Positions 1 through 58,772 of a stretch of DNA of 64,000 bases are shown here, piece after piece; positions within the stretch are counted from its first letter, which is position 1; each line of letters begins with the position of its first letter. The position numbers were made by a program, and so were the translations under genes. Below the pieces are notes generated by a model. The model was given only the letters and a program-made list of their open reading frames with translations, searched no databases and was not told the DNA's origin. The stretch spans positions 310,001 through 374,000 of the forward strand of contig JAUPSS010000011.1 in the NCBI GenBank assembly GCA_040285825.1. Direction: 5' to 3'. The DNA is from Eukaryota sp. TZLM1-RC. Lineage: Eukaryota; Protista; Metamonada: BaSk clade.

Positions 1-731
1 TTCAAATGTTGATAATTCCAACAATCGAATTTTCCATCTATAGAAATAAGTTCTTTTTATTCTATTGGCATTTTTAATGTTTTCAAAAAATGCAAGTTTC
101 CACCAGATGAAATTTCTTGATAAAAATCTTCTATTCATTTTGGAAGATTTAAAAGAAATTTTCCAATTAGTAAAGTGATTAGATAATTCCTTGGTATATA
201 ATTCAAATCGAAATTCAGTTTGAATACAATGAAGGACCCTTTTAAATAAAACAACAGTCTTCCATTTGTCAAATAGTCTTCTTATTTCTTCCTGTTCAAT
301 TAAGCATATGATAGTAGAAAATCGCCACTGTTTCAATGCATTATACGCTATATCAGCCATTACTTGGGGGACGAATCGTTTCTCAAGTGTTTTCACACCC
401 CTAACAAATCTCCACTTCATGAAGAAGTCACGAAGTAAACAACATGAGAGGTGAGAGGTAGAAGACAATGACTTGTTGGACTGTTGAGTAGTTCTTGTGT
501 GGTATTTCCATGAACGAAAGTAGCAACGTAAACGAAAACTAGAATACCATTGGTGAAAGTGAGTCCTAAGGATGTTAATGTATCGTTGTTCTATGAATAG
601 TATAGCAGACAACACGTGAATAGTCGATCGATCCATTCATTGACACCAATGTATAAGTCCACGTTAGTCAGGGTATTTTAATGCTGTGTTATCTTGACAG
701 CTGAATTGAATTCATGAATTGACTTACCATA

Positions 732-963
732 CTGTGAATTTCACTTATCATGCATTCCCCTGTGAAATTCACTCCTGTTTTCAACTTTCTCAATGTCTAC
801 TCACAGGCTGTAAGAGACATGTAGCGTCATTTGACAAAGACAATCATGATCTTCATCAATGGGCTACCTCACTTAAATACACCTACTGCTTTCACAGAAC
901 AAAGCCTCGCGACTTGATGTATCTAAGTGGATCTACCAAATGCTACTAAGGTATTTGTAGATC
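732..963 (-). ncRNA. Putative omegaRNA scaffold of Fanzor A copy 1
   Basis: Non-coding segment conserved in 3 copies between the stop codon and element end. Multiple stems, including GCGA and GAAA tetraloops. Confidence 0.7.
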
Positions 964-1015
964 GGTCCCAAAAGTTTTTTCAAAGTTTTTGTTTCTGTAT
1001 GCTCACGTTCCCCAT

Positions 1016-2972
1016 TCATCTTCTCAACAGAGCATCTGGGCAAATGTATCTTTCCGGCCACAATTCCGCTTTCTTCTTAATTTGAATATTTTTTGCAGCG
1101 GAAATATCTCTGTCATATACTATTTGACACTCAGTACAAATACGCATCTGCCATGAGCCTGCTTGAATATTCTCGGCCATGCAACAACTTGACATTTTGC
1201 TTGTATTAAATTCACTGGTTGACAAGTGCTTCACGTCCTTTTGATAACACAACCATTTTCTAAAAGCCCTTGCTGATCCATATCGATTGACTTTTCGGCA
1301 ATGAGAAGGGAAATTAGCAGAACCCACAGCAAGATAGAGTTTTTCAGGATGTCCAGCTAGCCTTTGAAATTTGTTGAGACTCTCTCTGAACCGTCTCTCT
1401 TTTCGTCTGCGGTTATCAAATTTAATTATTTTCCATTTCTGGCGATTACTTTCCAAATACACTTTCCTCCTGACCAAATTCCAATGGTTCAAATATTGGT
1501 TGAAATTTTGAACGGAATATTGGTTGGGAGAGTGTTTACTGGGTGAAGGTTTTGTCATGTATCTTCTGCCAGTTGGACAAGGAATAACTCCACATTGATT
1601 ATCATTTAAGAAGTAACCACATAATCTTGATTGGCCAAGATCAACGCCGATAAGGGACCTTTCAGGTAAAATTTCGACTGGATGTCTACGTCTTCGACGG
1701 GGCATTTTTTTAGTACCCTTCAACTGTGTTTCTCTGGTTTTGTTGGCATTAGGGTCACTTTTCATTTCATTTTTTGATCTTCTTTTCTTTTTCGGTGGTT
1801 CATCCAGCTCATCTGTGTTTTCTGAGTCATTATTTTTACCTTCAAAGGTCAAAAGCAGTTCATTACCATTAGTTTTCAATAAAATTTTGTTAAATCTATT
1901 TTTCAAACTTTTTCTGTTGATATTGAATTTTTGGTAAGGACATTGTTTGAATATTCGTTTCAGACATGTATTTTTGATAAACTTTGTTTTGGAAGATGAT
2001 CCTTCAATAATTGGAAATTTTTTTCACAGAGTGGAAAATTTGTGAAGGTACCTCAATAAATTTAGAACCTTTATGAGAAGCTAAAGGTATTATTCTAAAT
2101 TTCTTCCAGCAATGCATATGAGAAAAGAAAGTGAGTAAGTATTGTGAAATTTTAAGATTGAAGAGAAAAAGCTCACTAATTTCCTTTGATGAAAAAGTGA
2201 TTTTATCATGTGAGGACAGTAGGGAGGCAGTGGTAGGAAATCTTTGAAGGAGATTCAAGATAAACTTACATGCATTTAATAAAAAGAATCTTTCTCTTGA
2301 ATTATTCAAATTGAAATTGATGAGGTATTCAAGAACAGAATCAACTACTACTTTCTCGGGTTGGGCTAGTGGTTCATCTGGCAAAAGTGAAAGAATATTA
2401 TTTGCAAAGACATTTGTTTTATCCAGGGCTCTACAATGAGCACGAATAAAGTTCTTTGTCCAGGATTCACAAATTTTAGGTAAACTTGTCTTCACGTTAG
2501 ACGCCAATTGACGAGCCCGACAAGCAAGGTAAGGAGAAAGCCCTTTTCTATTGATAAAATTACAATTCTGAGATTGCAGCCAAGCATTGAGAAAAAGATT
2601 TAATGAATTTCTGTAAGGCACTAAAGAATTTTCCCACACAGAAACAAGAGACCTGTCTTGTGGGCATTCAGGAAGAAATCCATTGTAAAAGATATGGAGT
2701 AATTGGCGTTGGCCTTTAGATGTGGAAGGCTTAGGAAAAGAACCAGTGGTGATGACGGTCATAAACAGATACCATACATCCTTTTCCACTAAAGCTCTAG
2801 ATGCCAACGGAAAATTTAGAAGAAAAGATTGAAGTAATAAAGAAGCTTCATGACAAATCTCGGTGACCACAGGAAGGTCCGTCCGAATTTGTTGCACCGC
2901 TGCAGGGGTCAGCAGCGAGTTAAGTGCACAAGACCGAGTGAATACACGTGACACAGAGTGGGTGTCTGTCAT
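1016..2972 (-). CDS. Fanzor1-like RNA-guided RuvC endonuclease, ~651 aa after removing one base in the T7 run at 2018-2024
   Basis: ORFs 2004-2972 and 1016-1906 join if T7 becomes T6 (copy 2 has A6). Motifs: TNG (TDG-like), RuvC-I LIGVDLG, RuvC-II SEFNTSK, Zn finger CC...CTEC, RuvC-III YDRDISAAKNI. Confidence 0.85.
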
Positions 2973-3205
2973 GTAGTGAGAATAAAGAGCTCATCTATCA
3001 AATTTTACACTTGTCACCCCATTTTCGACTTCTGGTTGCCTGTTCTGGGAGGTTTTTAACCCTCAACTTGGTTTTGGGAGGTTTTCACTATTCCCACACT
3101 TTCTCCTCACTTCATAAACTAGGTTCTTATTTTTCTCACTTAACTTCTTTTTCGAGCTTTAGGACTCCCCTGTAATCTTTCAACTTCTTTCTATTACTCC
3201 CTCAG

Positions 3206-3477
3206 TTCATGCCCCACTACTGGCCCTCCACAAACTGCAACTTATGCTGCTCTACCACCGACGCCTCAACCGGTACAGTCCATGTACACACCGCCTGCTC
3301 CTCGCTGATCTGGTAATAATACCAGGAAAATTTTCCTTGAAAGCTCTGATTGGAAGTTAAACAAAACTGTTAGTCATTCATCAAACAAAAACGCTTCTGT
3401 CCCTAGCGTTTTACTTGGTTTGAAGCTTTCTAATGGCATCTCGAAGAAAAATGTTAACATTGAGCTAAACGAACGAA
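3206..3477 (+). pseudogene. Pseudogenised copy of the COMM-domain gene at 48915-49265
   Basis: Near-identical to the reverse complement of ~48975-49246. In-frame TGA replaces a Ser codon; 3' end cut by a non-LTR insertion. Confidence 0.85.
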
Positions 3478-3489: not shown

Positions 3490-5329
3490 TTTGACCTGCT
3501 TTCGTCTTCAGGTGTTAAACAAGGTGATCCACTTGGTCCTTTTTTCTTTTGTCTGGCAATTCATCCATTAATGTGCGAATTGAAAGAAAAATTCCCAGAA
3601 ATAGATATTGTAGCTATATGGATGACATTTCTGTAATTGCTCCTATTACAATTCTGAAACAAATAGCAACTTTTATTCAACAGCGTTATGAAGATATTGG
3701 TCTCTCATTGAATATCTCCAAATGTTTGATTATTGGCCACGAACCAATTGATTTTTTCATTAATGATGTCAATGTCCCCTTTATCAATTATGATCAGTCT
3801 GGTTTTCGTTTTTTGGGTTGTTATCTCGGAAATATTGATGAAGTGAAAGGCCAACATTCGACTCTGTTGACTCAATTTGGAAATGAATTAGAATCAATAG
3901 AAAATTTAAATATTGAGAAACATTTGAAATTCTTTTTCCTAAAAATCTGTTATTCTGGAAAATTTACTCATATTTTGAGATCTACATCACCATCAATTTC
4001 TTTGGAGTTTTGTCGCATTTTTAATGAACAAAGAACCAATTTTTTAGCAAAATTATTGGAAATTGATGCATCTCAGTTACGAAGCCACATTTTTTGTGGT
4101 ACAAATTTTGGTGGTGTTGATTTTCATAAATCAAGCTACCTTTGTAAAGCTGCCTTTATTGGAGGTGAAAGAATTTTATTTATGAATTTGTGAATCGTTT
4201 TCCTGAAAAAATTCATCTCATTGAAAATTGTGGCAGCTCTTATCTTATTTCTTTGCAACACGAAATTGAAACTCTTTCACCCAATATTTGGGCTAAATGT
4301 TTCCCCTCTGATATTGTGGAACTTCCTTCAAGAAGCTTGTTCTCCTTACCACTGACTTTTGCAAAATTGCAGAAAAAAATCTTGAAAGTTTTAGAAAACT
4401 TGGATTATATTGTACGTCTTAGCTTGGCTAAGAAAAAAAATCCCGTTTTTGCAAACTTTTTGATTGATCTTGAAGACAGTTGTTCAAGTTGCCTAATCTC
4501 CCAAATTCCAAACATTTATGGCCTTCTACTTAATGATCACCAATGGACCACTGCAATGAGAATGAGATGTTTTCTATGGCCTTGTTCATTACCAAATGAT
4601 TTAATTTGTCGCTGCAAGAGTGTTGTTACGCTTTCCCATATTTTAAACTGTAAGTATTTTATAACTTATCGCTCACTTGTTCATGACTCAGTTCGTGATC
4701 AATTATATGCCATGTGCAAAAGTTTCAATATAGAGGCATTTATTGAGCCACTAGTACGTAAGCTGTCTTCAGTTCAAACTGATGATTCCTTTGGTAAAAG
4801 AAGGGCAGATTTAGTAGCTCCAGGGATCGATGGTGTTCTCAATGTTGTAGACGTTGTCTCAGTGGATGTTTGCAAAAATTCTGCTGCTCGTTTAGTGTAT
4901 TCCGCTGACTCGCCGTTATCTAACGCCGAAAAAAAGAAGATAAAAAAATATGAAGAACCTTTGGCACAGTTAGGTAGAGTGGAACATGTGAAATATCAGT
5001 TTGTGCCGTTTGCAATTTCTCTTTTTGGCAATATTGGACCTTCAGGGTTGCACTTTTTTGAAAACTTTAAAAAAGTGTTACTGAATAGGTTTGGTAAAAC
5101 AATGAACTCCACTTTCTGGTTAAATAGAATTGTTTTTTGCATTTTCAAGTCTATTCCAACAATGATTTCAAAGGCACTTTTAGCTATTGGTGTAGAATAT
5201 GAACGTAATGCTGTGAGTAGGTTCAGTAATAGTGACGCTTGTTTGGAGGATATTGAATTCTAGATGGTTTTTTTTATCTCAATAATTATTCCAGTTTTAA
5301 AAATAAAACCTACCTATTATAAAAAAAAT
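3490..5329 (+). mobile_element. 5'-truncated RLE-type non-LTR retrotransposon (RT, CCHC finger, restriction-like endonuclease)
   Basis: SSGVKQGDPLGP and YMDD RT motifs; CRC...HILNC; RRADL..VVDV..AEKKKIKKY..FVPFAISLFG; short 3' A-rich tail. Confidence 0.85.
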
Positions 5330-10648: not shown

Positions 10649-12068
10649 TGTTTGTTTAAGGTTATTCTTTAGCTTTGTTTTGATCTGCGTTTATTTGTAT
10701 TTTACTTTAGTCGTAATTCTATCTGCTACGTGCAGATTCTATTTTTTCCCTTATTTAATAAATTGTTGTAACTTATTTGTGTAATCTCTTGTGTTTGTCA
10801 TGTTTTACCTTTCAGAAGCGGATCTTTTTCCTTTGTCTTTGATAGAGCTGTGATTTAGGAAAGTCCTCTTTAAAGATCTTTAAAATATAAACAAAATTGA
10901 GAACTTTACAACTGAAAAGCAAAAGATTTATGTGGATTATTGTTTGATCTCAAACTTTTAATTTCACTTAAGAACAGTTCAAAAACATCCTATTAAAATT
11001 ACAATTACCTTATCCAAATAGCGTCGATCGATTTGATGTCGTACTTTGGTAATATTAAGGCAAAGTTCAGACACTCATTTCATCAGTTTGCTTTCCCAAA
11101 TGATGAATTTGATCAAAAGTTCATTTTGTTATATGTCTATGTCAGTGTGGTCTAAGACCAGGTTCTGAAGAAAAATTACTATGAAACAGCTTTCACCATG
11201 ATGACCATAGCGTTGTGTAATTGTCTCGTAGAAATTTTGTGACAATGGCGTCCATCAAATTTGCCTCAATAGAGAGTTGTATATCAATTGCATTTTCTAT
11301 TTTGCTGCGGCAACAGTGGATTGAATGCAGTGCTGTTTAAAACTGCTTGAATTATCATCATAATTTGACCTTATTTCTGAGATTAGTGTTAATTTTAACA
11401 ATCAAGAGATTGTTCATAAAAGGGTGACCATGAGGTGGAAGTATGCAGATTAGAATTTTGCTGAGGAAAATGTTCTCCGAATTTTGTCCCAGTAATTCTG
11501 AGTTCATTTTGTTAAATTTCAAAGTTTAATAGAACATAAAGAAATAATACTATAGAAAAAACAAATTTCAAAAAAGGTCATTTAATACAATTATAGTAGT
11601 TTTTTACCAATTGCGAAAATTCCGTAAGAATGTACATTGGGACACGTATCCCAAATCTAAAAATACACGCAGCAATCAAAAGCTTTGTTTTGAAACAGAC
11701 AGGACTTGATGCAGTACTTGAGATGTTTTGAAACAGACTTGGTTTTGGTCTCCAGACAAATTCATATTTTAAAAACATTATCTATTGGAACACAAATAAA
11801 AGCAAATTATTGTCCTCATCACAACAACCACAATTTTCAATGTTATGTTTTTCACAATTTAAAGATCAGAGCGTTGCATTTTGAGTAATTATGTTGGGGG
11901 ACAATGATCTCAATGTTGTGTTGTCTCCATTATGTGAGACAGAGGTACTAAACTTGACGTGCAAGCAATGAAAAAGAATTTTTTAGGAATCAGTTTCAAC
12001 AATAGAACTAAAAAACTATCAAAAAAGTTTGGACTTGACACCCAAAATCCGTCTAGTCAACCCCAAGG

Positions 12069-12587
12069 TCAACTCGAGTCATGTTCAGGAGGTACATAAC
12101 AAACTCTACCACAATTGATAGGCAAACAACGACTCTTGGAGACATCATCGTTGTGAACGACTAATATTTCGACTTTATCACTGTTGCAGCGAGGAAAACA
12201 TGATCGTTCTAAGGTAGAGAAGAAGCGGCCACGGTTTTTGTCCTTTCCATCACATTCAGAGAAGTCATCGGCATCAGGATTAAAGAATGTCAGCCACACA
12301 ATAGTGATGGTTAGGAGTACACCACAGATGAGTACAATTGTTGCAAGACTGGCGAGAGGAACATTATCAGCACGCACTTCATGAAGAATGCGGATTGCAT
12401 ATAACCCGATATAGAAAATACCAACTAGAGCTAAAAAGTGAGGTATGTGGTGATAATTGAACTGCATGGTCACATCGTACACCCCTGTTAACAGTCCTAT
12501 CCCCATGGAGCTGAAACATAGACGAATGGTGCGATCACGAGGTCGACGGTCTTTTGGAAAACACGGAAGCTTAAATTGTTCAAACAT
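12069..12587 (-). CDS. Hypothetical 172-aa membrane protein (about 3 TM, Cys-rich C-terminus), copy 1
   Basis: Hydrophobic segments; protein identical to the copy at 14192-14710. Confidence 0.6.
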   Translation of the reverse strand: MFEQFKLPCFPKDRRPRDRTIRLCFSSMGIGLLTGVYDVTMQFNYHHIPHFLALVGIFYIGLYAIRILHEVRADNVPLASLATIVLICGVLLTITIVWLTFFNPDADDFSECDGKDKNRGRFFSTLERSCFPRCNSDKVEILVVHNDDVSKSRCLPINCGRVCYVPPEHDSS

Positions 12588-12701
12588 TTGACGTGGTGTA
12601 CTGGGTGACTGATGTGACTATGTCGTAGACAACCTAATGAAGTGATGGATTGTTGATTGAGTTGAAGTCAATCAATCAAAGAAATCAAAATCACAAATAT
12701 A

Positions 12702-13235
12702 CTGTGAATTTCTATCAAAACGCACTGCTGGCTTTTGACCAATTCATACAATCTTGATAGACGTTAAGCTTACTTTAGATCTATCACTCTATGATATCAC
12801 GATCAAACGATAGTTAAAGCAGCAACATCACAATACACGTACAGGTACGCAATACATGGAAAAACACTTATCTACGGGGTCTCCGGAACGCCTCAGGTCT
12901 TTCATTGTGGTAGTGCTCACTTATGGCAATCTCCAGTTGGTTTCTGGAAGCTGAGATGTCCCTCGACCAGAGTGTCTGACATTGAGGGCATACAAACTTA
13001 TCATTGTTCACCCTCCCATCATCGTGATACAACTTTTGATTGAATACCTTACAGCAATTCGTTTTGGCAGATGTGTAGAATTCATCTCCATTAGGCTTCA
13101 CATATGTAAAATGTTTCTGAATCTCCTTCAAAAAGCGCTTCCTTGGGGTTTTCACAGATTGTCTTGATGGCCCATCACCTCCACTACCAAACCAAATTAT
13201 GGTTTCTCTTCCATTAGCCATTAGTTTAATTTTTT
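12702..13235 (-). mobile_element. Duplicated 3' end of Fanzor B (RuvC-II/III, Zn finger, putative omegaRNA)
   Basis: DEFYTSAKTNCC...CPQC..WSRDISASRN; ends GAAATTCACAG|TA. Confidence 0.85.
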
Positions 13236-14191
13236 AGTTCATTTTGTTATATGTCTATGTCAGTGTGGTCTAAGACCAGGTTCTGAAGAAAAATTACTAT
13301 GAAACAGCTTTCACCATGATGACCATAGCGTTGTGTAATTGTCTCGTAGAAATTTTGTGACAATGGCGTCCATCAAATTTGCCTCAATAGAGAGTTGTAT
13401 ATCAATTGCACTTTCTATTTTGCTGCGGCAACAGTGGATTGAATGCAGTGCTGTTTAAAACTGCTTGAATTATCATCATAATTTGACCTTATTTCTGAGA
13501 TTAGTGTTAATTTTAACAATCAAGAGATTGTTCATAAAAGGGTGACCATGAGGTGGAAGTATGCAGATTAGAATTTTGCTGAGGAAAATGTTCTCCGAAT
13601 TTTGTCCCAGTAATTCTGAGTTCATTTTGTTAAATTTCAAAGTTTAATAGAACATAAAGAAATAATACTATAGAAAAAACAAATTTCAAAAAAGATCATT
13701 TAATACAATTATAGTAGTTTTTTTTACCAATTGCAGAAATTTCGTAAGAATGTACATTGGGACACGTATCCCAAATCTAAAAACACACGCAGCAATCAAA
13801 AGCTTTGTTTTGAAACAGACAGGACTTGATGCAGTACTTGAGATGTTTTGAAACAACAGACTTGGTTTTTGTCTTCAGACAAATTCATATTTTAAAAACA
13901 TTATCTATTGGAACACGAATAGAAGCAAATTATTGTCCTCATCACAACAACCACAATTTTCAATGTTATGTTTTTCACAATTTAAAGATCAGAGCGTTGC
14001 ATTTTGAGTAATTATGTTGGGGGACAATGATCTCAATGTTGTGTTGTCTCCATTATGTGAGACAGAGGTACTAAACTTGACGTGCAAGCAATGAAAAAGA
14101 ATTTTTTAGGAATCAGTTTCAACAATAGAACTAAAAAACTATCAAAAAAGTTTGGACTTGACACCCAAAATCCGTCTAGTCAACCCCAAGG

Positions 14192-14710
14192 TCAACTCGA
14201 GTCATGTTCAGGAGGTACATAACAAACTCTACCACAATTGATAGGCAAACAACGACTCTTGGAGACATCATCGTTGTGAACGACTAATATTTCGACTTTA
14301 TCACTGTTGCAGCGAGGAAAACATGATCGTTCTAAGGTAGAGAAGAAGCGGCCACGGTTTTTGTCCTTTCCATCACATTCAGAGAAGTCATCGGCATCAG
14401 GATTAAAGAATGTCAGCCACACAATAGTGATGGTTAGGAGTACACCACAGATGAGTACAATTGTTGCAAGACTGGCGAGAGGAACATTATCAGCACGCAC
14501 TTCATGAAGAATGCGGATTGCATATAACCCGATATAGAAAATACCAACTAGAGCTAAAAAGTGAGGTATGTGGTGATAATTGAACTGCATGGTCACATCG
14601 TACACCCCTGTTAACAGTCCTATCCCCATGGAGCTGAAACATAGACGAATGGTGCGATCACGAGGTCGACGGTCTTTTGGAAAACACGGAAGCTTAAATT
14701 GTTCAAACAT
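14192..14710 (-). CDS. Hypothetical 172-aa membrane protein, copy 2
   Basis: Identical protein to 12069-12587. Confidence 0.6.
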   Translation of the reverse strand: MFEQFKLPCFPKDRRPRDRTIRLCFSSMGIGLLTGVYDVTMQFNYHHIPHFLALVGIFYIGLYAIRILHEVRADNVPLASLATIVLICGVLLTITIVWLTFFNPDADDFSECDGKDKNRGRFFSTLERSCFPRCNSDKVEILVVHNDDVSKSRCLPINCGRVCYVPPEHDSS

Positions 14711-14825
14711 TTGACGTGGTGTACTGGGTGACTGATGTGACTATGTCGTAGACAACCTAATGAAGTGATGGATTGTTGATTGAGTTGAAGTCAATCAATC
14801 AAAGAAATCAAAATCACAAAATATA

Positions 14826-14991
14826 CTGTGAATTTCTATCAAAACGCACTTCTGGCTTTTGACCAATTCATGCAATCTTGATAGACGTTAAGCTTACTTT
14901 AGATCTATCACTCTATGATATCACGATCAAACGATAGTTAAAGCAGCAACATCACAATACGCGTACAGGTACGCAATACATGGAAAAACAC
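14826..14991 (-). ncRNA. Putative omegaRNA scaffold of Fanzor B
   Basis: Lies between the stop codon and the GAAATTCACAG|TA end. Inverted repeats CTATCAA/TTGATAG, GCGTAC/GTACGC and CTTTA..CTATC/GATAG.TAAAG. Confidence 0.55.
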
Positions 14992-16906
14992 TTATCTACG
15001 AGGTCTCCGGAACGCCTCAGGTCTTTCATTGTGGTAGTGCTCACTTATGGCAATCTCCAGTTGGTTTCTGGAAGCTGAGATGTCCCTCGACCAGAGTGTC
15101 TGACATTGAGGGCAAACAAACTTATCATTGTTCACCCTCCCATCATCGTGATACAACTTTTGATTGAATACCTTACAGCAATTCGTTTTGGCAGATGTGT
15201 AGAATTCATCTCCATTAGGCTTCACATATGTAAAATGTTTCTGAATCTCCTTCAAAAAGCGCTTCCTTGGGGTTTTCACAGATTGTCTTGATGGCCCATC
15301 ACCTCCACTACCAAACCAAATTATGGTTTCTCTTCCATTAGCCATTAGTTTAATTTTTTCAATTAATCCCATTATTCTTTTTTGCCTTCTTATAAAGAAA
15401 TCAAACTTGTTGCGGCGCAGGGCTCGGCGATCTCCATTTATCAGCAGTTGGTCTAGTATAGTTCTCGGACAGAAGTCGGGATTGCTGATTTCTTCCTGTG
15501 TCGGTACCCACATCAAAGGCATTGCTACTTCATTAAGATATTTGTGTAAATTCTTAGCAAAATAGCAATTTGGTGATGCATGGGTCAGGACCGGGGGGTG
15601 AATGATCTTCTTTGCGTTTGGATTCAGAACAAGGCCCGAAAGTTGATGATCAACATTGTTATTATCAATTCTTGATTCAATTGAATAACCACACAAATTT
15701 TTGTGATTAGGATCAATTGCACAAAATGAATATTCAATTGGATCAACTGGCGGAGGCTCATAGGCGTCGTCAGTTCTTCGACGTTGCCTAGGACGGACCT
15801 GTTGTTGAAGTCTAGAGTTTCGCTTTCGACTCTTTGCAGGTATATCGAGTTCCCCACTGGCTATGGTGGTTGCCAATTCTCTGGCTGTCCGGCGATTCTT
15901 ATTTTTTTTTGGGGGCAAAAGAAAAAGTGAAGCGGATTGAAACAGCATCTGAACTGATTGTGTAAGTCAGATACTTCTTTTTTCTGAAAAAGGCAAACGG
16001 ATCTTTCAGCAGACAGCGGTTGGCATTAAAAGAGAGAAAATGCTTTTCCAGTTGTTGACTAAAAGAGATAAAGCCAGGTGAATAACTGGGGGATGGGGAC
16101 ACGGCATTTCTTCGCATGGTGTCAGATGCAATATTTTCCAGAAAGGATAAAATATTTAGCCCAGCAGTGAATAAGAAGGTGATGTTGTCTGGACTGAGAT
16201 CAACATTGTCCATCATTAACATAGCGTCAAAACGATGAGGGTCGGCAACCTGCTGAGTAAATAGGTCCATTATGTACTCATGGTGACCTTCATCATACCA
16301 TGCGCGCAAAGAGTCACGAATAGTGGCTGCAGTCGTGTTCACCACTAATGAAGCATATTTCTTTGGGCAAGGGCACTCAAAGAAGGTAGCCATTGTCCGG
16401 AAGAAGTTCAGCTTCCAGGAGACAGGGCCATCAGTAAGTATTTGACAAAAGCTGTTCGCCATTTGCAGTGCGCGAAAGCTTCTAATGTCAGAGTGGCACC
16501 AGTTGTCGGTTCCCTTCTGAAAGCCAATAGGAGGAAACGGCCAGCCAGGTCGGAAAGAGACATCATATAGTGCGCGGTACACTTCCATATGATTCTCGAA
16601 TGGGCGTCTCACAGTCGGATGAGGTACCATTACAAAGTCTTGACATTGATACCAAAACTGTTGTTGATATAACCAGAAAGCCATTTCCGGATACTGCAGG
16701 ACGAACAGCTGTGCTAACCGGGCAGTAAGCACAGTGACAGTTCGAATATAGCGAAACTGTCTTTCCATTGAAACAAGAGCTGCAGTAGAGAAGAACTGAG
16801 CAGCACTTGCTGGAACTGTCGTCTTGCTGTCGTTTATTGGTTGCTCACGACGGTTAACCTCCCAGGGGAGTACATGCCCTCGACGTGGCAACTCTGGATT
16901 TGCCAT
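14992..16906 (-). CDS. Fanzor family B RuvC nuclease, ~637 aa after a 1-nt correction near 15901-15915
   Basis: SDAVSIRFTF (TDG-like), RuvC-I FCAIDPN, RuvC-II DEFYTS, CC..CPQC, RuvC-III WSRDISA, C-terminal ERP. The frameshift is in a T9/G5 run. Confidence 0.85.
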
Positions 16907-20320: not shown

Positions 20321-23300
20321 GTATTGTCCTTCAAAATCGGGTTCGTGGCAACCCGAAGCTTCATTATCAAAAGAATAAAAATATTCTGCAGTTTTTGTTG
20401 GCAGCGACTACAGGTGTTTCTTCGACCAAATCAAAAAATCTTTTTGTGCATGCGAATTCCTTTTTGAAGACAAATTTTTGGCCATTCAATTCATTTAACT
20501 TTTGTTGCATTTGTTTAGTTAAAGATGAAGTGATAGCAAACCGAATAGACAACCATTTCCTGATCAAAAAATGATTGAAATCCCCCTGAATTACACAATA
20601 TTTGGATATTTTTGACAATCATTTAGTCCAATCATTTGTTTGTTATCAAATTCCACATTGTTTTTTCCTTTATCATAGCTAATTTCAAGTCTCAGTGATA
20701 GAAACTTTGGCTATGCATGTATTCCAATGCCGCCACGAGGAAAAATAGTATTCTTTTGGCTGTTTGGGGAACAATCTGAAAAATAATGTGCTCCAAATTA
20801 CACATTGTTTAAAGATTTCCCAACTATGTTTTCTTGCTCATACATGGGCTTTCAGTACTATCAGATACTCAATGGATATGATATCACCTCTTCCAAGTTT
20901 CATGCCAGCCTTGATACAAAAACAAGTGCAATGAGTTGTACTGTACTCCATGACTTGACCCAAAAAGATATCCCCTTAGAAAACCCTGCAATAATTTTTA
21001 TTGGGTCAATTTTTTCCACCCATTTTCATCTTACCTATGCCATTCATTGTATTAGACTTCTTTTACATAGAGATTATCTCTACAAAGAAGGCTGCATCAA
21101 AAGATACAAAATTACGTGCTCTCCATAGTCATTTGGTCCAAGGAGAAAGTCAAAGTGTAAGGTGTTTACCCTTCTGAGAAAACTCAACAGTGTATTGTGA
21201 CTCCGGGTGTACATGATTATCTTCGTCCTTCGCAATTTTCCTTCAATTGCCATCGACAGCCAATTTTGGATTTCCTATCTACATCAGTTTTGTCTATGTT
21301 TTGTTCATTTGTTAACAATATCTTAAGACACAGTCTTGTTGAAATAGATGATCAGTCAACATCGAAATTATTAAGCAATTATTTAGTTTTTGCTGGTTTT
21401 TCAATGAAGAGATTTGATGAGAAAAGTTGTATTTTTACTGCTTGTTGTGAATTCAGCTTCTGACAAATTCATCTCGTTTTTTTACCACTCTAAAAATGGC
21501 CAACTGAATTTTAAATTCAGAACTGATTTCAAACTTTATTGTGTTGACTTAATGATTGTAATGTTGAAATCTTTAATAGCTACACATTCCCTTCCAATTA
21601 CTGCTGGTCTGGGTTCAATATTATATAAAAATAAACTTAACAACTATTCTTTGCTCCATTTTGTATAAAGCTGTTCGAGGCTAAAAAGCATGATGTAGAG
21701 TTAATATGATGATAGTTTCTGAATCTGAATATTAAATCGTGTGACAAGTTAATGGAGAAGGTAGACTAGTGTACCTGTGAAGATCCAAAGTTGTAACGGT
21801 GATGTTAAAAACTAAGTTGTTTTGTAACAGTTTTCATATCAGGTCTTAATAGAAACAAGAGAAATTTAGGTTGTAGAGATTCTGTTAACAAAAGAAAGAC
21901 AATGGAACCAGCATGATGACTATGCTCATTGGAAACCAGTGAGGTTGAAAGAACTGAGAAACACTGGACTATTAGGGATGAGGATACCTTGGGCAGCATA
22001 TTGTATACTTTATCCATCCACATCTCTCCACCTTCCCAAACTGCCTGTTGTAGCCCCTATAATTTCTGAAAAAAGCCAACCAATACAGGTCTGCTCTATC
22101 GACAGCATACCCGATCATGTTCCAACAGTGAACGTCCCGGAACCTGTAACAAGACAAGACGTTGCACCTCAGGAAGAACCAACTTCCTCTCAACCCATGG
22201 AAAGTGAAATTGGAGAAGACATTGAGTTGAACGGGCCAGTCGTTGGAGAAACGGCTCCTCCTCAACCCTCAGTAAGAGACTCTTCTTCCGATAGACCTAT
22301 GCGTATTGAGGACCTACAATCCTCAAGAAGAGCTATTGACATGAGCATAGCTAGTAGCCTTCATAGACAGATTGATCCACGGTCTAAGGATATCGACTAT
22401 AAAAGACCTCGATTATCCGCTGATGACCCTATTAACAAAATGTCTATCATAGCTTTTCTTTTAAAATAACAAACTGGGGATAAATACGGGCGAAAGATAG
22501 CTAATAGAAGCTTCGAAGCCCCAGGTCAATCAGATTGGACCAGAGCCTTTATGATAGCTACCCAGCTATTTGGAGAAGGCCAAGCAGAAATAACCCAAGA
22601 TAGGATCAAAGATCTCCCCAAACATATACGCGACGAGATCACCAGGGATACAACACAGCCTTTGGTAAGGATTGATCCAGCTATAACAGATAAGCTCGGA
22701 CCCCCAATCCACCATTATGATTTATTTAGGAGCATGATGATGAGCACTTGCCCCACAGGAATATCCAGCATGATCGACCCTAGCCTTCTATCTAGATGGC
22801 AGAGTCAAGGTTTACTCGGTGTTGATTATACCGACGCCGACGTCATGGTATTTCTGTTAAAAAGAACGCAATTCACATCATATCATGAGGCTTGTACAGC
22901 TCTAATGAAGCCTAGAATAAATTGGAGGAAAAATCCACAATAGGCATGAGGCTGACAACGAGTTTGGTCGTTATGTAGAAGATTTTGGAGACGTTTTGAG
23001 AATGACCACCTACATGACCGACCTAACCATCCCCGATTTAATTAGAGGAAGCAGTGGGTTGATAACCATATCTCCCGCTCTAATAGCCGAGTACTTCCTT
23101 ATGGGTCTGGATAACTTTGCTATATCAAGCGAACTCCTCCCAGTATGGACTAGGGAATCCTTGTGGGACTCACCGAACAGAACAACTCTACTCGATTTGA
23201 TATCGACAACGAGAAGACATTTCCTCGCTTGGTGTTACACAGCAGGAAACAAGCCCACAATGGATGTACTAAGGAACAGGGCTAACGAAGAAGATATTCC

Positions 23301-26300
23301 TTTGGGACTCACGGCAATGAGAACTTACTCAAGAGGAGTAACACCATCAGCCCAGGCTCCAACAAAACGAGCAAGACGATCAGGTGGAAAGTCAAGAGGA
23401 ACCCCTCAACACAAATACATCCCTGAAAAGCATGAACGAGAAGGGTCAAAATTCTGTAAATTCTGCAGCAACGTCGAAGGTAACAATCCTGTTGGCCACA
23501 CTGTATTCGAATGCAAAGACCCTCGTTGTGCTAGAAGCAGAGTTCCCAAAGAAGAAAGATTCAGATTAGGAGAACAGGAGGCGCCTGCTAGTAGAGGCAG
23601 TGTAGAAAGGGGCCGAGGTGGCCGTGGTAGACGTGTACATAGATTCAAATTTAGAGGCCGTGGAGGCCGTTATAGAGGCCATAAAGGAAGAGGTCAGTAC
23701 AGACCTATACATAACATAAACACAACAGAGGACATATCATCAAACGCATCCCCTACTGAGTCAAAACCGACCCGTTCGAGTACGGTTCCTCACAGACGGA
23801 TCAACAACAGCAACCGGAACAGCAGGACAGGCAACTTTCCTAATCGGGTACATATCAACGCAATCAATCACAACCAATCAACAACCGATTTAGGAAACCC
23901 AGTCAACAACTTTCCAACAGCTCAACAAAATCTTTTAATTCCTCTACAAATTCACCAAACCAGCTCTGATATCAATAACATTTTTGATATTAATTCTACG
24001 GTTAGTGAAAACCACGTCAGGTCCCAGCGTTCTCCATTTCTAAGACTGGAGATATCAATAAATGATATTAAAATGATTGCGACTATAGATTCGGCTGCGT
24101 TTTTGTTCAGTTATTACTGCAGATTTAGCTGAACAATGCCATATGTCAATCAATAGCAAGGATACTATTAAGTTCTTACCAGCTAATAACGTATCCACAA
24201 AATCGCTAGGGAGTGCAACTGGTATTCTGTCGTTCAACGTAGGAAGCATTGCGCAACAAGTTCACTATAAACATACTCTTCCCATAATCCCGGGTTCGAA
24301 CAAATTATTAATAGGGACAGACATGTTAAAAGCACTTGGGCTTCAGACGGATGATGGTCTTTTCATTAGATTAGACAAAGAACACCGCACTTTGCTAAAT
24401 GCAGAATCAGAATTCGACTCTAGGATCGCTCAACATTCGATTGGGAACTTAGATAACCAATCACCAAGTCCTTCTGATTTTTGAGGAGCAATTAGCAAGA
24501 TCTGGATGTGAGATAAATTTAGATGATAGTAATAATAAATTAAAATTAACGAGTCTACTAAAATTATTCAGCGATGTTTTTAGTGAAACTCCTAATAGAA
24601 AAGGAATCGATTGTAATCCTCTAACAATCCCCTTTAGAGATGAGAATGCTATAGTACATAAACCTGCTAGACGGTTAAATCCCAGCAAAATGGAAATAGC
24701 AAACAAAATATTTGATGAACTGATCGAAATGGGCTATGCAGTTGAATCTAATTATAAATTCAGCTCTCCTATTGTCTTAGTTATATACCCTGACGGCAAA
24801 AAACCCAGGTTAACTGTAGACTTTAGTGGTAAAGATGGAGTTAATGCCCATACGATTTCAGTAGAGCCTAATCTACCTAGGATTAGTGATATATTAGAAT
24901 TTTTGAGTAGAGCAAATTACATCGCCACGCTTGATTTACCAAAAAGCTTTCTGGCAGATGAATGTTGCTGAGAAGGATATTGAGAAAACATCAATCTCAA
25001 TCCCTGGAAGATCAATTATGTTTAAAAGAGCTTGCTTCGGATTAAAGAACATCCCAGCAGTTTTTCAAAATGTAATGATGGAAATATTCCAAATTGATGG
25101 CGTTTTTATATATATTGATGATATCATAATAGTTGGAACGACTTTCGAAGAATTCTATAAGAGATTACAAAGAGTCCTCCAATGCGCCAGAAATAGACGT
25201 GTAAATATAGGCTTACGTAAATGTAAATTCGTAACATCAAAACACCCTATCGACATTTTAGGAAGTACCTTCCAGGATAAAACTAGATTTATAAGTAAGA
25301 AAAAAATCGAAGCCTTGATGAGAATCCTTAGACCAAAAACAGTAAAAGAAGTTCGCTCATTGGTAGGATCCATCAATTATATTAGAGATTGGCTTCCAGG
25401 TATTTCTGAATTAATTGCTCCAATTAACGAGCTAATTAAAGGAAAACCCAGAATAATTAAATGGACTTGCAAGCATGACGATTACTTAAAACAAATAAAA
25501 GACCTAATAGTAAACCACATGCCCCTTGAATTACCAGCTCCGGGCAAGCGAGTATTGATAAGTACTGACGCTTCAGATGTAGCAGTAGGAGGTGTTATTT
25601 GGCAAGAAATTGAACCCTACTCCCCTGCAGGAACCCCGCTAAATAAAAAGGAAATTGAAACCTTTGTCATTCTATAGTAGATTACTTACAGAAACACAAA
25701 GAAAATGGTCCACCTTACAAAAAGAATTATACGCAATACTTCTGATTTTAACTGAAAGTTGTTTAGAAAGCTACTTGTTAACTAGACATTTAACAATTTT
25801 CACAGATCATAAAAACATTGCATTCCTGGCTACAGCCCCAGAGAAAAATAGAATCGTAAAGAGATGGCTGCCGATACTATCTGAATTCGACTTTGACATA
25901 GTCCACGAACCTGGTGAAGACAACCATTGGGCAGATATGTTATCGAGGAATATTGATTTGGATCAAAACGAGGAAACTCCTTCTATTTGTAGTATAAATA
26001 TACCAGACACTTTACTTTCAAATTACGAGATACCTCCACTAGACGATGATTCTGATTCGGATCTTGAAGACATCCCTTCAATCTCATCTCTAAGTAGACA
26101 CCAAGACCTACCTATTTTTTCTTCTTGGCTGTCTAAGATAAGATCTGAACAACAAATAGCCAAAAACAACAACGACTCTTTTATTTGATAACGCAATTCT
26201 AGATGTAAACACTCAAATTTGGAAAAATAATAAAAACAAAATTTTGATTCCAAAGAGCCTCAGAAAACAGGCACTATTATTAATACATGGTTTGGTTCAA

Positions 26301-26870
26301 TCTGGTCACCCCAGCAAAAACGATAGTTTACACAAACTGTCCAAAAGGGATTTCTACTGGCCCAATATGAGAAAGGACCTTATTAATCATGTCAAAAGAT
26401 GCCCAACTTGTCAAAAACGGCTCCAGTTAAAAGATCAAAAACACCTTCCACAGGATCTTTATGGGCAGATCGTCCTTTTGCCAGATTAAATGTCGATACA
26501 ATTGGACCCCTAAATTCTGACAACGAAGGAAATAAATATCTATTAGTATTTGTAGACTCTTTTACTGGATATACAATTTTAGTCCCTCTAAAAGAACTCA
26601 ATGCCTTAGAAACCGCAGATGCCTTGATTTGGAATGTTTGCGCTATCTTTGGCATACCTATGTTAATTCATAGTGATAATGGACCTGAGTTCGCCAATGA
26701 GACTTTCAAAATAGTGTGTAACAGATTAGCGATTGAGATGAGTAACTCAATTCCCCACTATTCAGAAAGTAATGGACTTGTAGAACGTAAACATAGAGAC
26801 GTTCTTCAATGCTTAAGGAAACTATTAATAGATTTCAATGATTACGGAAATTGGTCTACATACGTACCTA

Positions 26871-26950
26871 TGTTGGCGCCCTAAGGCTTATATAATATGA
26901 ATAGAAAATAAATCAGACTTTTTCTTTACTACAATAGACTTTAGGCAACA
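26871..26950 (+). repeat. 5' LTR of element 2 (80 bp)
   Basis: Identical to 33984-34063; differs from 42044-42122 by one T. Confidence 0.95.
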
Positions 26951-27405: not shown

Positions 27406-30400
27406 AATTCTAGAACCTGTCTCAAAGGGAACGGATGGAGATCCCACCTTAGACACGTCTTCCCCATTAGGAGAATATGAAGAAATTCAATCTCAACTAG
27501 ATGAAATGGAGGGAGAAGACGACTCTTCTGAGGGGTTCTACAAGTTATTAAGAGAGGACGCGGAGGCTTACCTCGAACCAACAGATTTCTGTCTGTTCGA
27601 GCAACTTCCCCCTTTATGGAGTTACGTTCAAAAAAAGAGGCAGAAACGTTGGTTTTCAGACCCTCGGAATGATTGGGGATACCCAAAAGGTATTGGAAAT
27701 TCCCCTCAATGAAAGGAATGAACTCATAAAGGCACTCGATAAATTGAGTAGAGAGACATTCGGGCGTAACGCAGAACGCCGCCCCAGAATCTCTGGAATG
27801 GACAAGAGAATCAATGAATTGATGTCTCTTCCCATCAAAGATAGATTGGATTGGAAGGCCTCCTTCCTAGATCAATACGGCAGGAGAATAAGGTTTCTCT
27901 CCATCGAACAGAGAAGTAGGACCGACTCGGAAGACACCCTACAATCCAAATTGCCTGCCTGGTTTGATCCTAACTTTGATACGGAAATCCATAATTACAC
28001 GGAGCTGACAGAGGGTGCTCCCACATATTTTAGGGAATTTATGGAGCAGGAGGATAGTAGTGAACAAGACAAGCTTGAACCAGTAACCCCTGGTTTGATG
28101 CAGACGCTCTAAATAACATTCATACGGAACGATCAGCTGTATCCACGTATAGGAGCCGTCCTAACAACTACACCCAACAACATGGTAACTCGTTCACAAA
28201 ACAACGAGAGTTTAGACAATGGGTAACGGGAGATCCATCCACATCTCTCCACCTTCCCAAACTGCCTGTTGTAGCCCCTATAATTTCTGAAAAAGCCAAC
28301 CAATACAGGTCTGCTCTATCGACAGCATACCCGATCATGTTCCAACAGTGAACGTCCCGGAACCTGTAACAAGACAAGACGTTGCACCTCAGGAAGAACC
28401 AACTTCCTCTCAACCCATGGAAAGTGAAATTGGAGAAGACATTGAGTTGAACGGGCCAGTCGTTGGAGAAACGGCTCCTCCTCAACCCTCAGTAAGAGAC
28501 TCTTCTTCCGATAGACCTATGCGTATTGAGGACCTACAATCCTCAAGAAGAGCTATTGACATGAGCATAGCTAGTAGCCTTCATAGACAGATTGATCCAC
28601 GGTCTAAGGATATCGACTATAAAAGACCTCGATTATCCGCTGATGACCCTATTAACAAAATGTCTATCATAGCTTTTCTTTTAAAATTTCAAACTTGGGA
28701 TAAATACGGGCGAAAGATAGTTAATAGAAGCTTCGAAGCCCCAGGTCAATCAGATTGGACCAGAGCCTTTATGATAGCTACCCAGCTATTTGGAGAAGGC
28801 CAAGCAGAAATAACCCAAGATAGGATTAAAGATCTCCCCAAACATATACGCGACGAGATCACCAGGGATACAACACAGCCTTTGGTAAGGATTGATCCAG
28901 CTATAACAGATAAGCTCGGACCCCCAATCCACCATTATGATTTATTTAGGAGCATGATGATGAGCACTTGCCCCACAGGAATATCCAGCATGATCGACCC
29001 TAGCCTTCTATCTAGATGGCAGAGTCAAGGTTTACTCGGTGTTGATTATACCGACGCCGACGTCATGGTATTTCTGTTAAAAAGAACGCAATTCACATCA
29101 TATCATGAGGCTTGTACAGCTCTAATGAAGCCTAGAATAAATTGGAGGAAAATCCACAATAGGCATGAGGCTGACAACGAGTTTGGTCGTTATGTAGAAG
29201 ATTTTGGAGACGTCTTGAGAATGACCACCTACATGACCGACCTAACCATCCCCGATTTAATTAGAGGAAGCAGTGGGTTGATAACCATATCTCCCGCTCT
29301 AATAGCCGAGTACTTCCTTATGGGTCTGGATAACTTTGCTATATCAAGCGAACTCCTCCCAGTATGGACTAGGGAATCCTTGTGGGACTCACCGAACAGA
29401 ACAACTCTACTCGATTTGATATCGACAACGAGAAGACATTTCCTCGCTTGGTGTTACACAGCAGGAAACAAGCCCACAATGGATGTACTAAGGAACAGGG
29501 CTAACGAAGAAGATATTCCTTTGGGACTCACGGCAATGAGAACTTACTCAAGAGGAGTAACACCATCAGCCCAGGCTCCAACAAAACGAGCAAGACGATC
29601 AGGTGGAAAGTCAAGAGGAACCCCTCAACACAAATACATCCCTGAAAAGCATGAACGAGAAGGGTCAAAATTCTGTACATTCTGCAGCAACGTCGAAGGT
29701 AACAATCCTGTTGGCCACACTGTATTCGAATGCAAAGATCCTCGTTGTGCTAGAAGCAGAGTTCCCAAAGAAGAAAAGATTCAGATTAGGAGAACAGGAG
29801 GCGCCTGCTAGTAGAGGCAGTGTAGAAAGGGGCCGAGGTGGCCGTGGTAGACGTGTACATAGATTCAAATTTAGAGGCCGTGGAGGCCGTTATAGAGGTC
29901 ATAAAGGAAGAGGTCAGTACAGACCTATACATAACATAAACACAACAGAGGACATATCATCAAACGCATCCCCTACTGAGTCAAAACCGACCCGTTCGAG
30001 TACGGTTCCTCACAGACGGATCAACAACAGCAACCGGAACAGCAGGACAGGCAACTTTCCTAATCGGGTACATATCAACGCAATCAATCACAACCAATCA
30101 ACAACCGATTTAGGAAACCCAGTCAACAACTTTCCAACAGCTCAACAAAATCTTTTAATTCCTCTACAAATTCACCAAACCAGCTCTGATATCAATAGCA
30201 TTTTTGATATTAATTCTACGGTTAGTGAAAACCACGTCAGGTCCCAGCGTTCTCCATTTCTAAGACTGGAGATATCAATAAATGATATTAAAATGATTGC
30301 GACTATAGATTCGGCTGCGTTTTGTTCAGTTATTACTGCAGATTTAGCTGAACAATGCCATATGTCAATCAATAGCAAGGATACTATTAAGTTCTTACCA

Positions 30401-46043: not shown

Positions 46044-47545
46044 ATGAATAACACTCTACAAACCACAACTGTGGGAGCGTCTGTTAACCAGTTCCTTTGG
46101 CTTAGAGGCATGAGAAGCTATGGAACGCCGGTTCCAAGTTCTCGCTAGTATTGAAGCTCATGCTACTCACCAAGCACGACTCTTTGTACTCCGATACTTA
46201 AAACAGTCTAGGTGGCTTACTCAAAGCCAGTTCTGGAGCCTCTGTTTCGACTTTGTTTGTGAAAGAGAACGCAAACAGAGAAAAACAATCCTCTGGATTT
46301 TCAAGGCTGCAACATCTCGTGCAGCACTTTTGGCCTTGGCATTCACGGAATGATACCACGTCAGCCAACGGTGGTACATTGGTGCCATTCCAGTCTGTTT
46401 GGCAGTCGAGCCATTCAACTGAGGAAAGCTTTTTGCCAGCTGTTGGCTGACGGCTTTGTTGCTTGGAAAACAATTTTTTCAAGAGATGTGCCCAGAGACT
46501 GAATTGCCCTGGTCCTAAAAAGTACGTCGAGTGTGTACTTCAAGATCTTCAGCCGAATGACTCTATTTCACAATGGTATCAAGAAATGTACCAACCTATT
46601 TTGACCCACTTGCTAAATACGACAGCAAATCCCTATATTGGTGGGGGTCCAAATATGTTGGAAACCTCAACCAGAAATGAACGATTTACCATAAATGTGG
46701 AAACTGCAGCCACAATCTTTCAGTCAGGACTGAACATTTTATCTTTTCTAGAAAATAACTGCCCTGGGGTTATGAAAAGACATTCTCTCTCACTTTTATC
46801 CAGTTAGTCTCCAAGTTTCTGCAGTTTGAATAAAAAACCGAAGTTTATTTAACAAAACTTAATGAAACCAAAGAGCTGCTGAACAACCCTTATCGGTTTT
46901 TTAATAAATCTAAATTTATTAATTATACCATTTTTCAAATGGTGATTCTCTGCGGTTTATGTTCACCCAGAAGACAAGGAAAACATATAGTTACCCGACT
47001 AAAGCGGAATTTGAGTCGAGACGTGTCTCTTGAAATAATGATTTTCAGAACTCTGTAAGGAAAAAAAACGTAATGGCCATAGAAAAGCAAATCCACAGCG
47101 GAGCCAGTGGATGGACATTCCAATTATCGAGATTCTGGTGGAAATTTTTTTGTAGCGATTGACCCCAACGTCAGCAATCTTTGTGGGTGAACTACTGGTT
47201 GTTTCCAAAATTCTGCACATGTTTTTGAGGGTTCTGGCTTGCTGCTAAACCCAAAAGAACGAATATCAAATCGCCTTCCTCCTCTCACTCAAGCAACTCC
47301 TAATACTTATTCCGCTCAGAGCTTCCAGAGGTATCTGATTGAAATAAGTTTACCTTATGTTTCTGCATCTGAGGAAGGACCTGAATATTTTTCAATTATG
47401 TGTGGAAACCTGCAGCGTGGTGCAAGAAAAAAGTTGAGAAGAAATAAGTTTGAATTTTTCATACGAAGACAAAAGAGACTAACTGGTTTTATCAACAAAA
47501 TTATACGCTTGACTGAGAAGGAAACACTACAGTTTGGTTCTGCAT
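46044..47545 (+). pseudogene. Degenerate, 3'-truncated Fanzor family C (relative of family B)
   Basis: MERRFQVL..QARLFVLRY..FWSLCFDFV aligns with the B N-terminus; FVAIDPN (RuvC-I) near 47150; RRNKFEFFIRRQKRL. Lacks RuvC-II/III. Confidence 0.8.
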
Positions 47546-47642
47546 TTAATTTCATTCAATATCCATTTGATGTGAAATTCTCAGGTTGTCTGGCAAAAAA
47601 AATGAAAAACCGATTTGTTTTATCCTGCATTTGGGAGACCTA

Positions 47643-48464: not shown

Positions 48465-48914
48465 TATTGGAAACGTGTTGTAATAAAGTTGAGCAAAAAC
48501 TTACTATATATGGGAATCTGAAAAGGATGAAGCAGCCAAAGATTTAATTCCTGGAGGCCTGCTATGTCCAAGTCTTAGATGTTGCTTGGATCATGATGAA
48601 ATCAAAGAAGTCTATGGCAATTTACTTGAGTAGATTGTGAATGTTGTTATTTTTTAGATAAAGTTTACTGTGGTTTTCACTTTAATTGCATTTTGGTGTA
48701 TTTTTTTTCACCAACCAGATCTTGCACCAACGTCTGGTTTCTCTCTACGACATTTATGGGCCTTAGTTTTCAACTTTTACTTAATGGTGTAGACATAAAA
48801 CACAGAAAACCTAGAACACACAGTTCAGGAGCTTCTTAGCATAATAACGTGCTAATAATGTTCAAATAAACAACAAAAAACATCAACTATTTATTTACAA
48901 AATAACTTACTTTA

Positions 48915-58752: not shown

Positions 58753-58772
58753 TACTCTCAATTCATCCCTCA

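Follow-up and report, generated by a model that had tools for sequence, protein, structure and literature searches.

The window analyzed here, a stretch of 64,000 nt, comes from Eukaryota sp. TZLM1-RC (assembly GCA_040285825.1, contig JAUPSS010000011.1, positions 310,001-374,000, forward strand), that is, from Skoliomonas litria, an anaerobic free-living metamonad of soda lakes. It lies among eukaryotic genes on a contig of 1.2 Mb in the S. litria assembly, the nuclear-genome setting expected of a Fanzor1 locus, and contains three copies of a unit encoding a protein of the Fanzor1 type, a group of compact RNA-guided eukaryotic enzymes that attract interest as genome-editing tools and for what they tell about the persistence of transposons. 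The three copies, reported in a first-pass annotation made from the letters alone, are borne out by comparison of the window with itself. The copies and the part that they share are:

730-3180, gene on the minus strand: copy 1, the reference copy.
49720-52096, plus strand: copy 2, 95.8% identical to copy 1.
56274-58754, plus strand: copy 3, 89.8% identical to copy 1.
732-3172, minus strand: conserved core of copy 1, with a leader of ~200 nt, the Fanzor1 gene, a structured 3' region and the right end.

Apart from copies 2 and 3, the core is found at nine loci of GCA_040285825.1, with identities of 88-97%, and hypothetical proteins annotated in Eukaryota sp. TZLM1-RC are 90-97% identical to the window Fanzor. 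The genomic comparison covered the window and 12 loci (L001-L012, which also serve as names of the copies that they hold). We read 732-3172 as the conserved core of a high-copy, non-autonomous transposon family that carries a Fanzor1 gene together with an RNA scaffold, and put the probability of this reading, taken as a whole, at about 0.75.

The Fanzor1 gene of the core is intron-less and has 651 codons. In copy 1, a run of seven adenines (A7) is the only thing that separates two open reading frames (ORFs), whose products are called the N piece and the C piece below:

2004-2972, minus strand: N-terminal ORF, 322 aa, the final 4-5 residues out of frame.
2018-2024, minus strand: A7 homopolymer that splits the frame of copy 1; A6 restores the 651 codons seen in paralogues.
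1016-1906, minus strand: C-terminal ORF, 296 aa, with WED strands, RuvC I-III and the TNB Zn finger; the true frame extends upstream to 2017.

The run is A6 in copies 2 and 3 and at L001, L002, L004 and L007. The paralogue P0099 of the same genome, annotated with 651 aa, reads straight through it; residues 1-318 of P0099 are 97% identical to the N piece and residues 356-651 are 98% identical to the C piece. Six more annotated paralogues (P0001, P0022, P0060, P0077, P0084 and P0085) read through with A6. The first-pass annotation had obtained a protein of ~651 aa from copy 1 by dropping one homopolymer base, and the two frames do join in this way: A6 at 2018-2024 yields 651 codons, the length of the intact P0099, and copy 1, like L008 and L009, has no in-frame stop. 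The assembly was built from Nanopore R9.4 reads and Illumina-corrected. In the short-read evidence, which consists of assembled contigs of runs X1 (depth 49) and X2 (depth 29.5), the run is one base shorter, the A6 form; A7 is found in no contig of these runs, and the majority substitutions in the contigs create no stop codon. The short-read check of 2018-2024 suggested with the first pass thus points to A6, at depths that, coming from assembled contigs, are not specific to copy 1. Because the short-read contigs and the six annotated paralogues read A6, the seventh adenine is probably a Nanopore homopolymer error of the assembly. In L008 and L009, which are 97% identical to copy 1, every indel is a +/-1 change within a run of A, T or G, as expected of unpolished Nanopore repeats. 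Repeats seem to be poorly polished in this assembly, and many of its Fanzor genes that look broken may really be intact. Copies 2 and 3 are truly decayed, the former by frameshifts at 50460 and 51453 plus one in-frame stop, the latter by six indels and three stops.

In the protein analyses, P0099 stood in for the joined 651-aa reading of copy 1. The C piece matches Pfam PF07282 (Cas12f1-like TNB) at 9.3e-7, with 29.4 bits against a cut-off of 26.3. A single-sequence search of the PDB with the C piece returned a weak Cas12m Zn-finger match alone; searching with one sequence was too weak, so profiles were needed. The profile of the C half finds SpuFz1 at E 2e-30 and GtFz1 at 2e-12, and that of the full-length protein ranks SpuFz1 (6e-22), PpFz1 (9e-12) and GtFz1 (3e-9) ahead of TnpB (6e-5). 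The TnpB matches in these searches, at about 1e-5 (3e-5 to 6e-5), are restricted to the Zn finger. The best profile matches are Fanzor1 proteins, not TnpB, Cas12 or Fanzor2, and the Fanzor identity assigned to the copy 1 gene in the first pass is upheld by both profile and structure searches. The AlphaFold2 (AF2) model of the C piece has a predicted local distance difference test (pLDDT) score of 68, with 80-93 in the core; when the C-half model is compared with known structures by Foldseek, rows 1-24 are all Cas12 (Cas12f), TnpB or Fanzor, and the top template modeling (TM) score, 0.44, is to SpuFz. Pfam PF07282 and the AF2/Foldseek comparison point to a split RuvC fold with a TNB Zn-finger insertion. 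The N piece, which has no match in a Pfam scan, is modeled as all-helical and REC-like (pLDDT 64); Fanzor1 structures, with GtFz and SpuFz on top, rank 1, 2, 6 and 7 among its Foldseek matches at E values of 0.65-1.8, which are not significant, and in the model it weakly resembles Fanzor1 REC domains. The sites of interest, given with their state in the family protein alignment (A1) and with residues counted from the C piece, are:

1775-1798, minus strand: basic stretch PPKKKRRS, read from the translation, a putative nuclear localization signal; a second basic run, PRRRRRHP, follows further on.
1640-1642, minus strand: RuvC-I aspartate in GVDLG; D89, invariant in A1; aligns with D383 of SpuFz1 (IDPN).
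1211-1213, minus strand: alternative RuvC-II glutamate in SEFNTSK; E232, invariant in A1; aligns with E541 of SpuFz1 (DEYKTS).
1127-1186, minus strand: Zn-finger cysteines, CC-x14-CxxC; C242, C257 and C260 invariant in A1; within the PF07282 match.
1106-1108, minus strand: RuvC-III aspartate in DRDISAAKNI; D267, invariant in A1; aligns with D606 of SpuFz1 (NRD).

The D-E-D triad of RuvC and the four cysteines of the Zn finger, both features noted in the first pass, are present in copy 1, and the triad is invariant in A1. The canonical RuvC-II site reads AVGSANF and holds no glutamate; the glutamate of the triad occupies the alternative (DExxTS) position, as in Fanzor1. The C piece has 21 matches among 1.84 billion representative proteins, nearly all from three skoliomonad genomes, and to judge from these matches the family is confined to skoliomonads. 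A literature search found no paper linking Fanzor with metamonads. The family is thus genuinely of the Fanzor1 kind, the first such family described here for a metamonad, and it is probably active or was so until recently. A relative, P0008, 41% identical, is found at L005 (TZLM3-RCL, GCA_040285805.1; 2923-7065) between XPG-like and WD40 genes; its 3' spacer measures just 85 nt, the annotated XPG model P0026 swallows the Fanzor N-terminus, and this copy may be immobilized or domesticated.

Beyond the gene, the unit reaches a right end that is identical in position from copy to copy:

730-744, minus strand: right terminus, GTGAAATTCACAG then TA, at which the homology of all copies stops.
700-731, minus strand: right flank of copy 1, the presumed guide template, unlike every other right flank.

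All three window copies end with GTGAAATTCACAG (in copy 3, ...CACAA), followed by TA and then by unrelated DNA. Homology stops at CACAG in copies 1, 2 and 3, at L001, L006, L008, L009 and L012, and in several read contigs. The nucleotide after the right end is T in all copies; most have TA, and L001 and L006 have TT. The right flanks are all different and single-copy, with at least 10 distinct ones when the other loci and the read contigs are counted. The first-pass claims that the right end is definable and that the right flanks differ in all copies both stand: homology ceases at one point with unique DNA beyond it, and the precise right end is sound. The guides proposed in the first pass are nothing else than these right flanks, and each would start at the TA or past it; the flank of copy 1 would serve as its guide.

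A second Fanzor family of the window, family B (P0012/P0016-like), lies on the minus strand at 14824-16906 with ORFs at 15899-16906 and 14992-15948. Its 3' region is shorter, at ~166 nt, and has its last 13 nt and the TA after them in common with the present family (family A), to whose proteins those of family B are ~30% identical; the shared 13-nt terminus suggests a shared functional signal. A duplicate of the family B terminus is present at 12700-12712, within a 2.1-kb tandem duplication (11118-13235 / 13236-15359), and the family B right end lies 116 nt upstream of an ORF at 14192-14710.

Between the stop codon and the right end of copy 1 lies a structured block:

732-974, minus strand: candidate omegaRNA scaffold, ~240 nt, eight helices.
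734-772, minus strand: terminal hairpin with 11-nt arms, GTGAATTTCAC / GTGAAATTCAC, and a 17-nt loop.

The GEM-RC1 orthologue P0093 (locus L010), with 59% amino acid identity, is accompanied by the entire 3' region and by the terminus ATGAAATTCACAG, then TA. Between S. litria and GEM-RC1, identity is 75% at codon position 1, 86% at position 2 and 44% (43.6%) at position 3, and it is 73.5% in the 3' non-coding block. From this codon-position pattern and the identity of the non-coding block it follows that both the protein and the 3' block are under constraint, and purifying selection on both is shown. The 3' block folds better than shuffled sequences (z = -2.5), and its consensus fold contains eight helices, from 969 to 734, with 98% of cells paired. 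Four pairs are altered on both sides, a count reached by 0 of 500 shuffles and compared with 0-2 in slid controls; one of them, in the terminal hairpin, exchanges C-G for U-A, and GEM-RC1 retains the stem of this hairpin around an otherwise unrelated loop. Covariation support for the scaffold is moderate and comes from one diverged lineage. A scan of 600-3300 against Rfam found no family. P0008 was also considered for the covariation analysis; with its short spacer and no recognizable right end it was unusable. The block fits an omegaRNA scaffold that ends at the precise right end, which is where scaffold and guide would be expected. For the omegaRNA proposed in the first-pass annotation, what is seen is a conserved structured block at 974-732 that ends at the right end; the RNA itself is a prediction.

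The opposite side of the unit calls for a substantial revision. The first-pass annotation had described 732-3172 as a complete transposon with definable ends, a single 2.44-kb unit defined by the three copies, and had placed the target-adjacent motif (TAM) within (AAAG)ATTA. The features that bear on these claims are:

3173-3476, minus strand: A-arm remnant of copy 1, which includes AAAGATTA (3173-3180) and has a decayed COMM-domain ORF on its opposite strand.
48655-52096, plus strand: copy 2 as a whole, the sole copy in the window with both termini.
48668-48680: left inverted repeat of copy 2, followed by the A arm to 49245, a substitute segment of 475 bp at 49246-49720 and the core to 52094.

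As the annotation stated, AAAGATTA precedes both intact left ends, standing directly before CAGGGG in copies 1 and 3. The single unit does not survive comparison with copy 2, which lacks the first ~45 bp and has 475 bp in their stead, and beside which the supposed left flank of copy 1 is repeated: 3206-3476 of copy 1 recurs at 48975-49245 with 96% identity. This sequence is the A arm, and in copy 1, L003, L007, L011 and L012, on five contigs, the sequence continues unbroken across 3172 into it. Being repeated and continuous, the A arm shows that the element, not the flank, includes AAAGATTA along with ~300-600 bp on its left. Approximately 600 bp further left, the A arm begins with CTGTGGTTTTCAC beside unrelated DNA in copy 2 (48668), L003 (3195) and L012 (5498). 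CTGTGGTTTTCAC agrees with the inverted right terminus, CTGTGAATTTCAC, at 19 of 25 nt, a count reached by 0 of 100 shuffles, and the two termini lie at both homology boundaries. Complete A-type elements, as judged from these sequences, start there, ~600 bp further left, at an inverted copy of the right terminus. With the left inverted repeat ~610 bp outward, AAAGATTA is internal to the element and is not the TAM; it is repeated along with the core in copy 1 and at L003, L007, L011 and L012, the very outcome that the annotation had named as incompatible with its TAM. Copy 1 itself has no true left terminus, its A arm being cut at ~3476, where it adjoins a reverse-transcriptase fragment.

Other copies have other left sides. 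L008 and L009 have a common 675-bp left arm joined at copy 1 position 3112, the 475-bp segment of copy 2 is joined at position 3129, and several copies (L001, L002, L004 and L006) are simply cut on the left. Copy 3 consists of the core only, with a different upstream sequence, in which neither a left inverted repeat nor a duplicated right-flank 9-mer was seen beyond chance; its 179 nt upstream and the 475-bp segment of copy 2 have no match among the 12 loci. Nothing similar precedes the ORF at the GEM-RC1 locus, and the two species therefore do not have the left arm in common. The alignment of genomic copies and empty sites envisaged with the first pass has been productive on the former side, where comparison of the 12 loci revealed the A arm as part of the element; no empty site was seen. 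The arms also hold pieces of host genes. A COMM-domain ORF fragment (Pfam 7e-10) lies antisense in the A arm; in copy 2 it occupies 48915-49265 (minus strand), and it is annotated as proteins of 84-85 aa at at least six loci. A fragment of an MJ1316 RNA-cyclic-end-recognition domain (1.3e-9) is found at 49478-49669 (minus strand), within the 475-bp segment of copy 2. The retroelement fragment next to the cut A arm of copy 1 extends over 3549-5263 (plus strand), with a YMDD reverse-transcriptase motif and a weak RVT_1 match; a related retroelement interrupts another Fanzor copy (P0022, L004).

Within the reading preferred here, the family is a high-copy, non-autonomous DNA transposon that may be of a cut-and-paste (MULE-, hAT- or Tc1-like) or of a Helitron2-like kind. 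In the 64 kb there are exactly three occurrences of the 10-mer TAGATAAAGT (48655, 49268 and 52095), each at a junction of copy 2: left of its inverted repeat, at the start of the 475-bp segment and right after the right end. It may stem from duplication of the target site, from two insertions or from a head-to-tail joint. No transposase partner with the same termini was seen within the window and the 12 loci. By analogy to TnpB and Fanzor1, a transcript of the 3' region would run over the right end, its element-encoded part folding as the scaffold and its flank-encoded part acting as the guide. The nuclease-RNA complex would then cut guide-matching DNA beside the TAM, that is, the unoccupied site, and repair templated by an occupied copy would restore or spread the element, whereas the element as such would be moved by a transposase encoded elsewhere. 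Cleavage, TAM and transposase in this scheme are all proposed by analogy.

Several observations weigh against the reading of 732-3172 as the core of such a family. Most of the examined copies are broken or cut at the left. The omegaRNA itself is predicted from the sequence. The evidence for a target-site duplication is conflicting, with a 10-nt repeat at copy 2 and none at L012, L008 and L009. The left terminus is not pinned, as the similarity among copy 2, L003 and L012 extends ~13 nt past the inverted repeat, and copy 3 and one X2 contig, which diverge from the A arm no more than 1 nt from 3180, have no explanation in the long-element model. The RuvC-I motif reads DLG in the family and in the GEM-RC1 orthologue and so departs from the DPG signature; DPG distinguishes Fanzors and is not a catalytic requirement (Yoon et al., 2023). 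Because the nearest relatives, in TZLM3-RCL, read DPG or DPN at this site, DLG looks like a secondary P-to-L change, and DPG was not treated as defining. Finally, L008 and L009 have A7 as well, which may therefore be a genuine mutation carried by a subfamily.

This last point underlies the view that copy 1 is a dead relic, its extra A being a true frameshift of the subfamily formed by copy 1, L008 and L009, and that the window copies make no nuclease. A7 in three assembled copies, the frameshifts and stops of copies 2 and 3 and the fragmentary state of most annotated family proteins all speak for it. It has to contend with the short-read contigs, which lack A7 and carry A6 at depths of 49 and 29.5, with the other indels of L008 and L009, all of the +/-1 homopolymer kind that is a Nanopore signature, and with copy 1 itself, which is free of in-frame stops and matches the intact P0099 at 97-98% identity; we consider it possible, if doubtful. 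The model of the first pass, in which 732-3172 is a complete element of the IS200/605 or IS607 style, AAAGATTA/ATTA is its TAM and the A arm is ancestral insertion-site DNA, draws on AAAGA(T/G)TA, which stands right before the core in copy 1, copy 3 and one X2 contig that diverge just to its left, on the TA found on both sides of the 2.44-kb unit, and on reported Fanzor1 TAMs, which end in TA or are A/T-rich (CATA, TTAAN). In an IS200/605-like unit the motif would be external, with unrelated DNA around it at every insertion, and that is not what is found here: the A arm is joined to the core at five loci on five contigs with unrelated right flanks, and so moves with the core; it starts with the inverted right terminus exactly at the homology boundary; the junctions with other arms fall at 3112 in L008/L009 and at 3129 in copy 2 and not at 3172; and an empty site was not seen. 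This model is very unlikely.

A different account of the left arms is one-ended or rolling-circle (Helitron2-like) mobilization from the right end, the arms resulting from failed or early termination and from capture of host genes. It would explain a right end that is constant, has a subterminal hairpin and is always followed by T, the many copies cut solely on the left (L001, L002, L004, L006 and copy 3), the three or more types of left arm with host-gene fragments (at least three, with COMM and MJ1316), and the asymmetry of an inverted repeat that is terminal on the right and ~13 nt subterminal on the left; in Chlamydomonas, Fanzor1 copies reside in Helitron2 elements with asymmetric terminal inverted repeats. 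Yet no Rep/helicase gene was seen, the termini are unlike the TC...CTRR of classical Helitrons, copy 2 is flanked by a 10-nt direct repeat as would befit a target-site duplication, and truncation on the left could also come from nested insertions of retroelements, which are common here; we regard this origin as unlikely. A bolder extension treats the core as a module anchored at its right end that acquires new left arms, host gene pieces included, through repair of Fanzor breaks or one-ended copying, the terminus GAAATTCACAG plus TA, common to the second, ~30%-identical Fanzor family, being a common signal for one mobilization or RNA-processing machinery, possibly the Fanzors. If true, Fanzor elements would be spreading in a way that has not been described for them; at present it appears decidedly improbable.

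Among solved structures, SpuFz1 of Spizellomyces punctatus (PDB 8GKH, 9CEU-9CEZ) is the best relative by profile (E 2e-30). Both proteins are ~640-650 aa long, with a TNB Zn finger and a helical N-terminal half; they share the catalytic layout with an alternative glutamate in DE(Y/F)xTS (D383, E541 and D606 in SpuFz1), and in both systems a non-coding RNA region 3' of the ORF, a candidate RNA in the present case, reaches the right end of the transposon. They differ in that identity is ~13-15% in the structural alignment, that RuvC-I reads DPN there and DLG here, that the N-terminal half of the window protein is not recognizable by sequence, its structural match being merely suggestive, and that the host is a fungus there and a metamonad here. 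The full-length profile of the window family matches GtFz1 at 3e-9 and PpFz1 at 9e-12. Chlamydomonas CrFNuc (Helitron2) is likewise multi-copy, with an RNA in the 3' untranslated region that is conserved across copies, and is associated with eukaryotic transposons that have asymmetric terminal repeats. Unlike GtFz1, PpFz1 and CrFNuc, the window family has no intron and its left arms are mosaic.

TnpB of IS200/IS605 (ISDra2) and IS607 shares the RuvC and TNB core; its guide comes from the flank beyond the right end, and the homing and retention logic of the mechanism proposed above is borrowed from it. In contrast to TnpB, the window protein has its glutamate at the alternative position, a eukaryotic host and an NLS-like stretch (that is, one resembling a nuclear localization signal). 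The TnpB rule by which the TAM is read from the motif just before the left end, on its 5' side, is inapplicable here because the left end is not where the first pass placed it, and TAM-library or editing work that assumes ATTA as the TAM or 3172 as the boundary would begin from a wrong premise. Capture elements of the Pack-MULE and Helitron types are similar in their host-gene fragments (here COMM, 7e-10, and MJ1316, 1.3e-9) and inverted terminal motif, and one copy here, copy 2, has a flanking repeat of 9-10 nt; they differ in that three further copies with two boundaries lack such a duplication and in that an RNA-guided nuclease is part of the cargo. With an undamaged 651-aa gene, recent copies by the dozen and a candidate scaffold that is kept between species, the family offers a defined protein-RNA pair.

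The window holds further repeats and ORFs near these copies. A third Fanzor remnant lies on the plus strand at 46463-47643, ~1 kb left of copy 2; its ORF at 47239-47643 is 36% identical to residues 394-490 of P0012 (E 7e-16). An ORF of 490 aa at 58740-60212 (plus strand), co-oriented with copy 3, starts at or just past the right end of that copy. Elsewhere, a 4.9-kb repeat occurs at 22012-26871, 28233-33091 and 35334-40166, with two copies 99% identical and one inverted at 82%, and is surrounded by sub-repeats of 80 to 660 bp.

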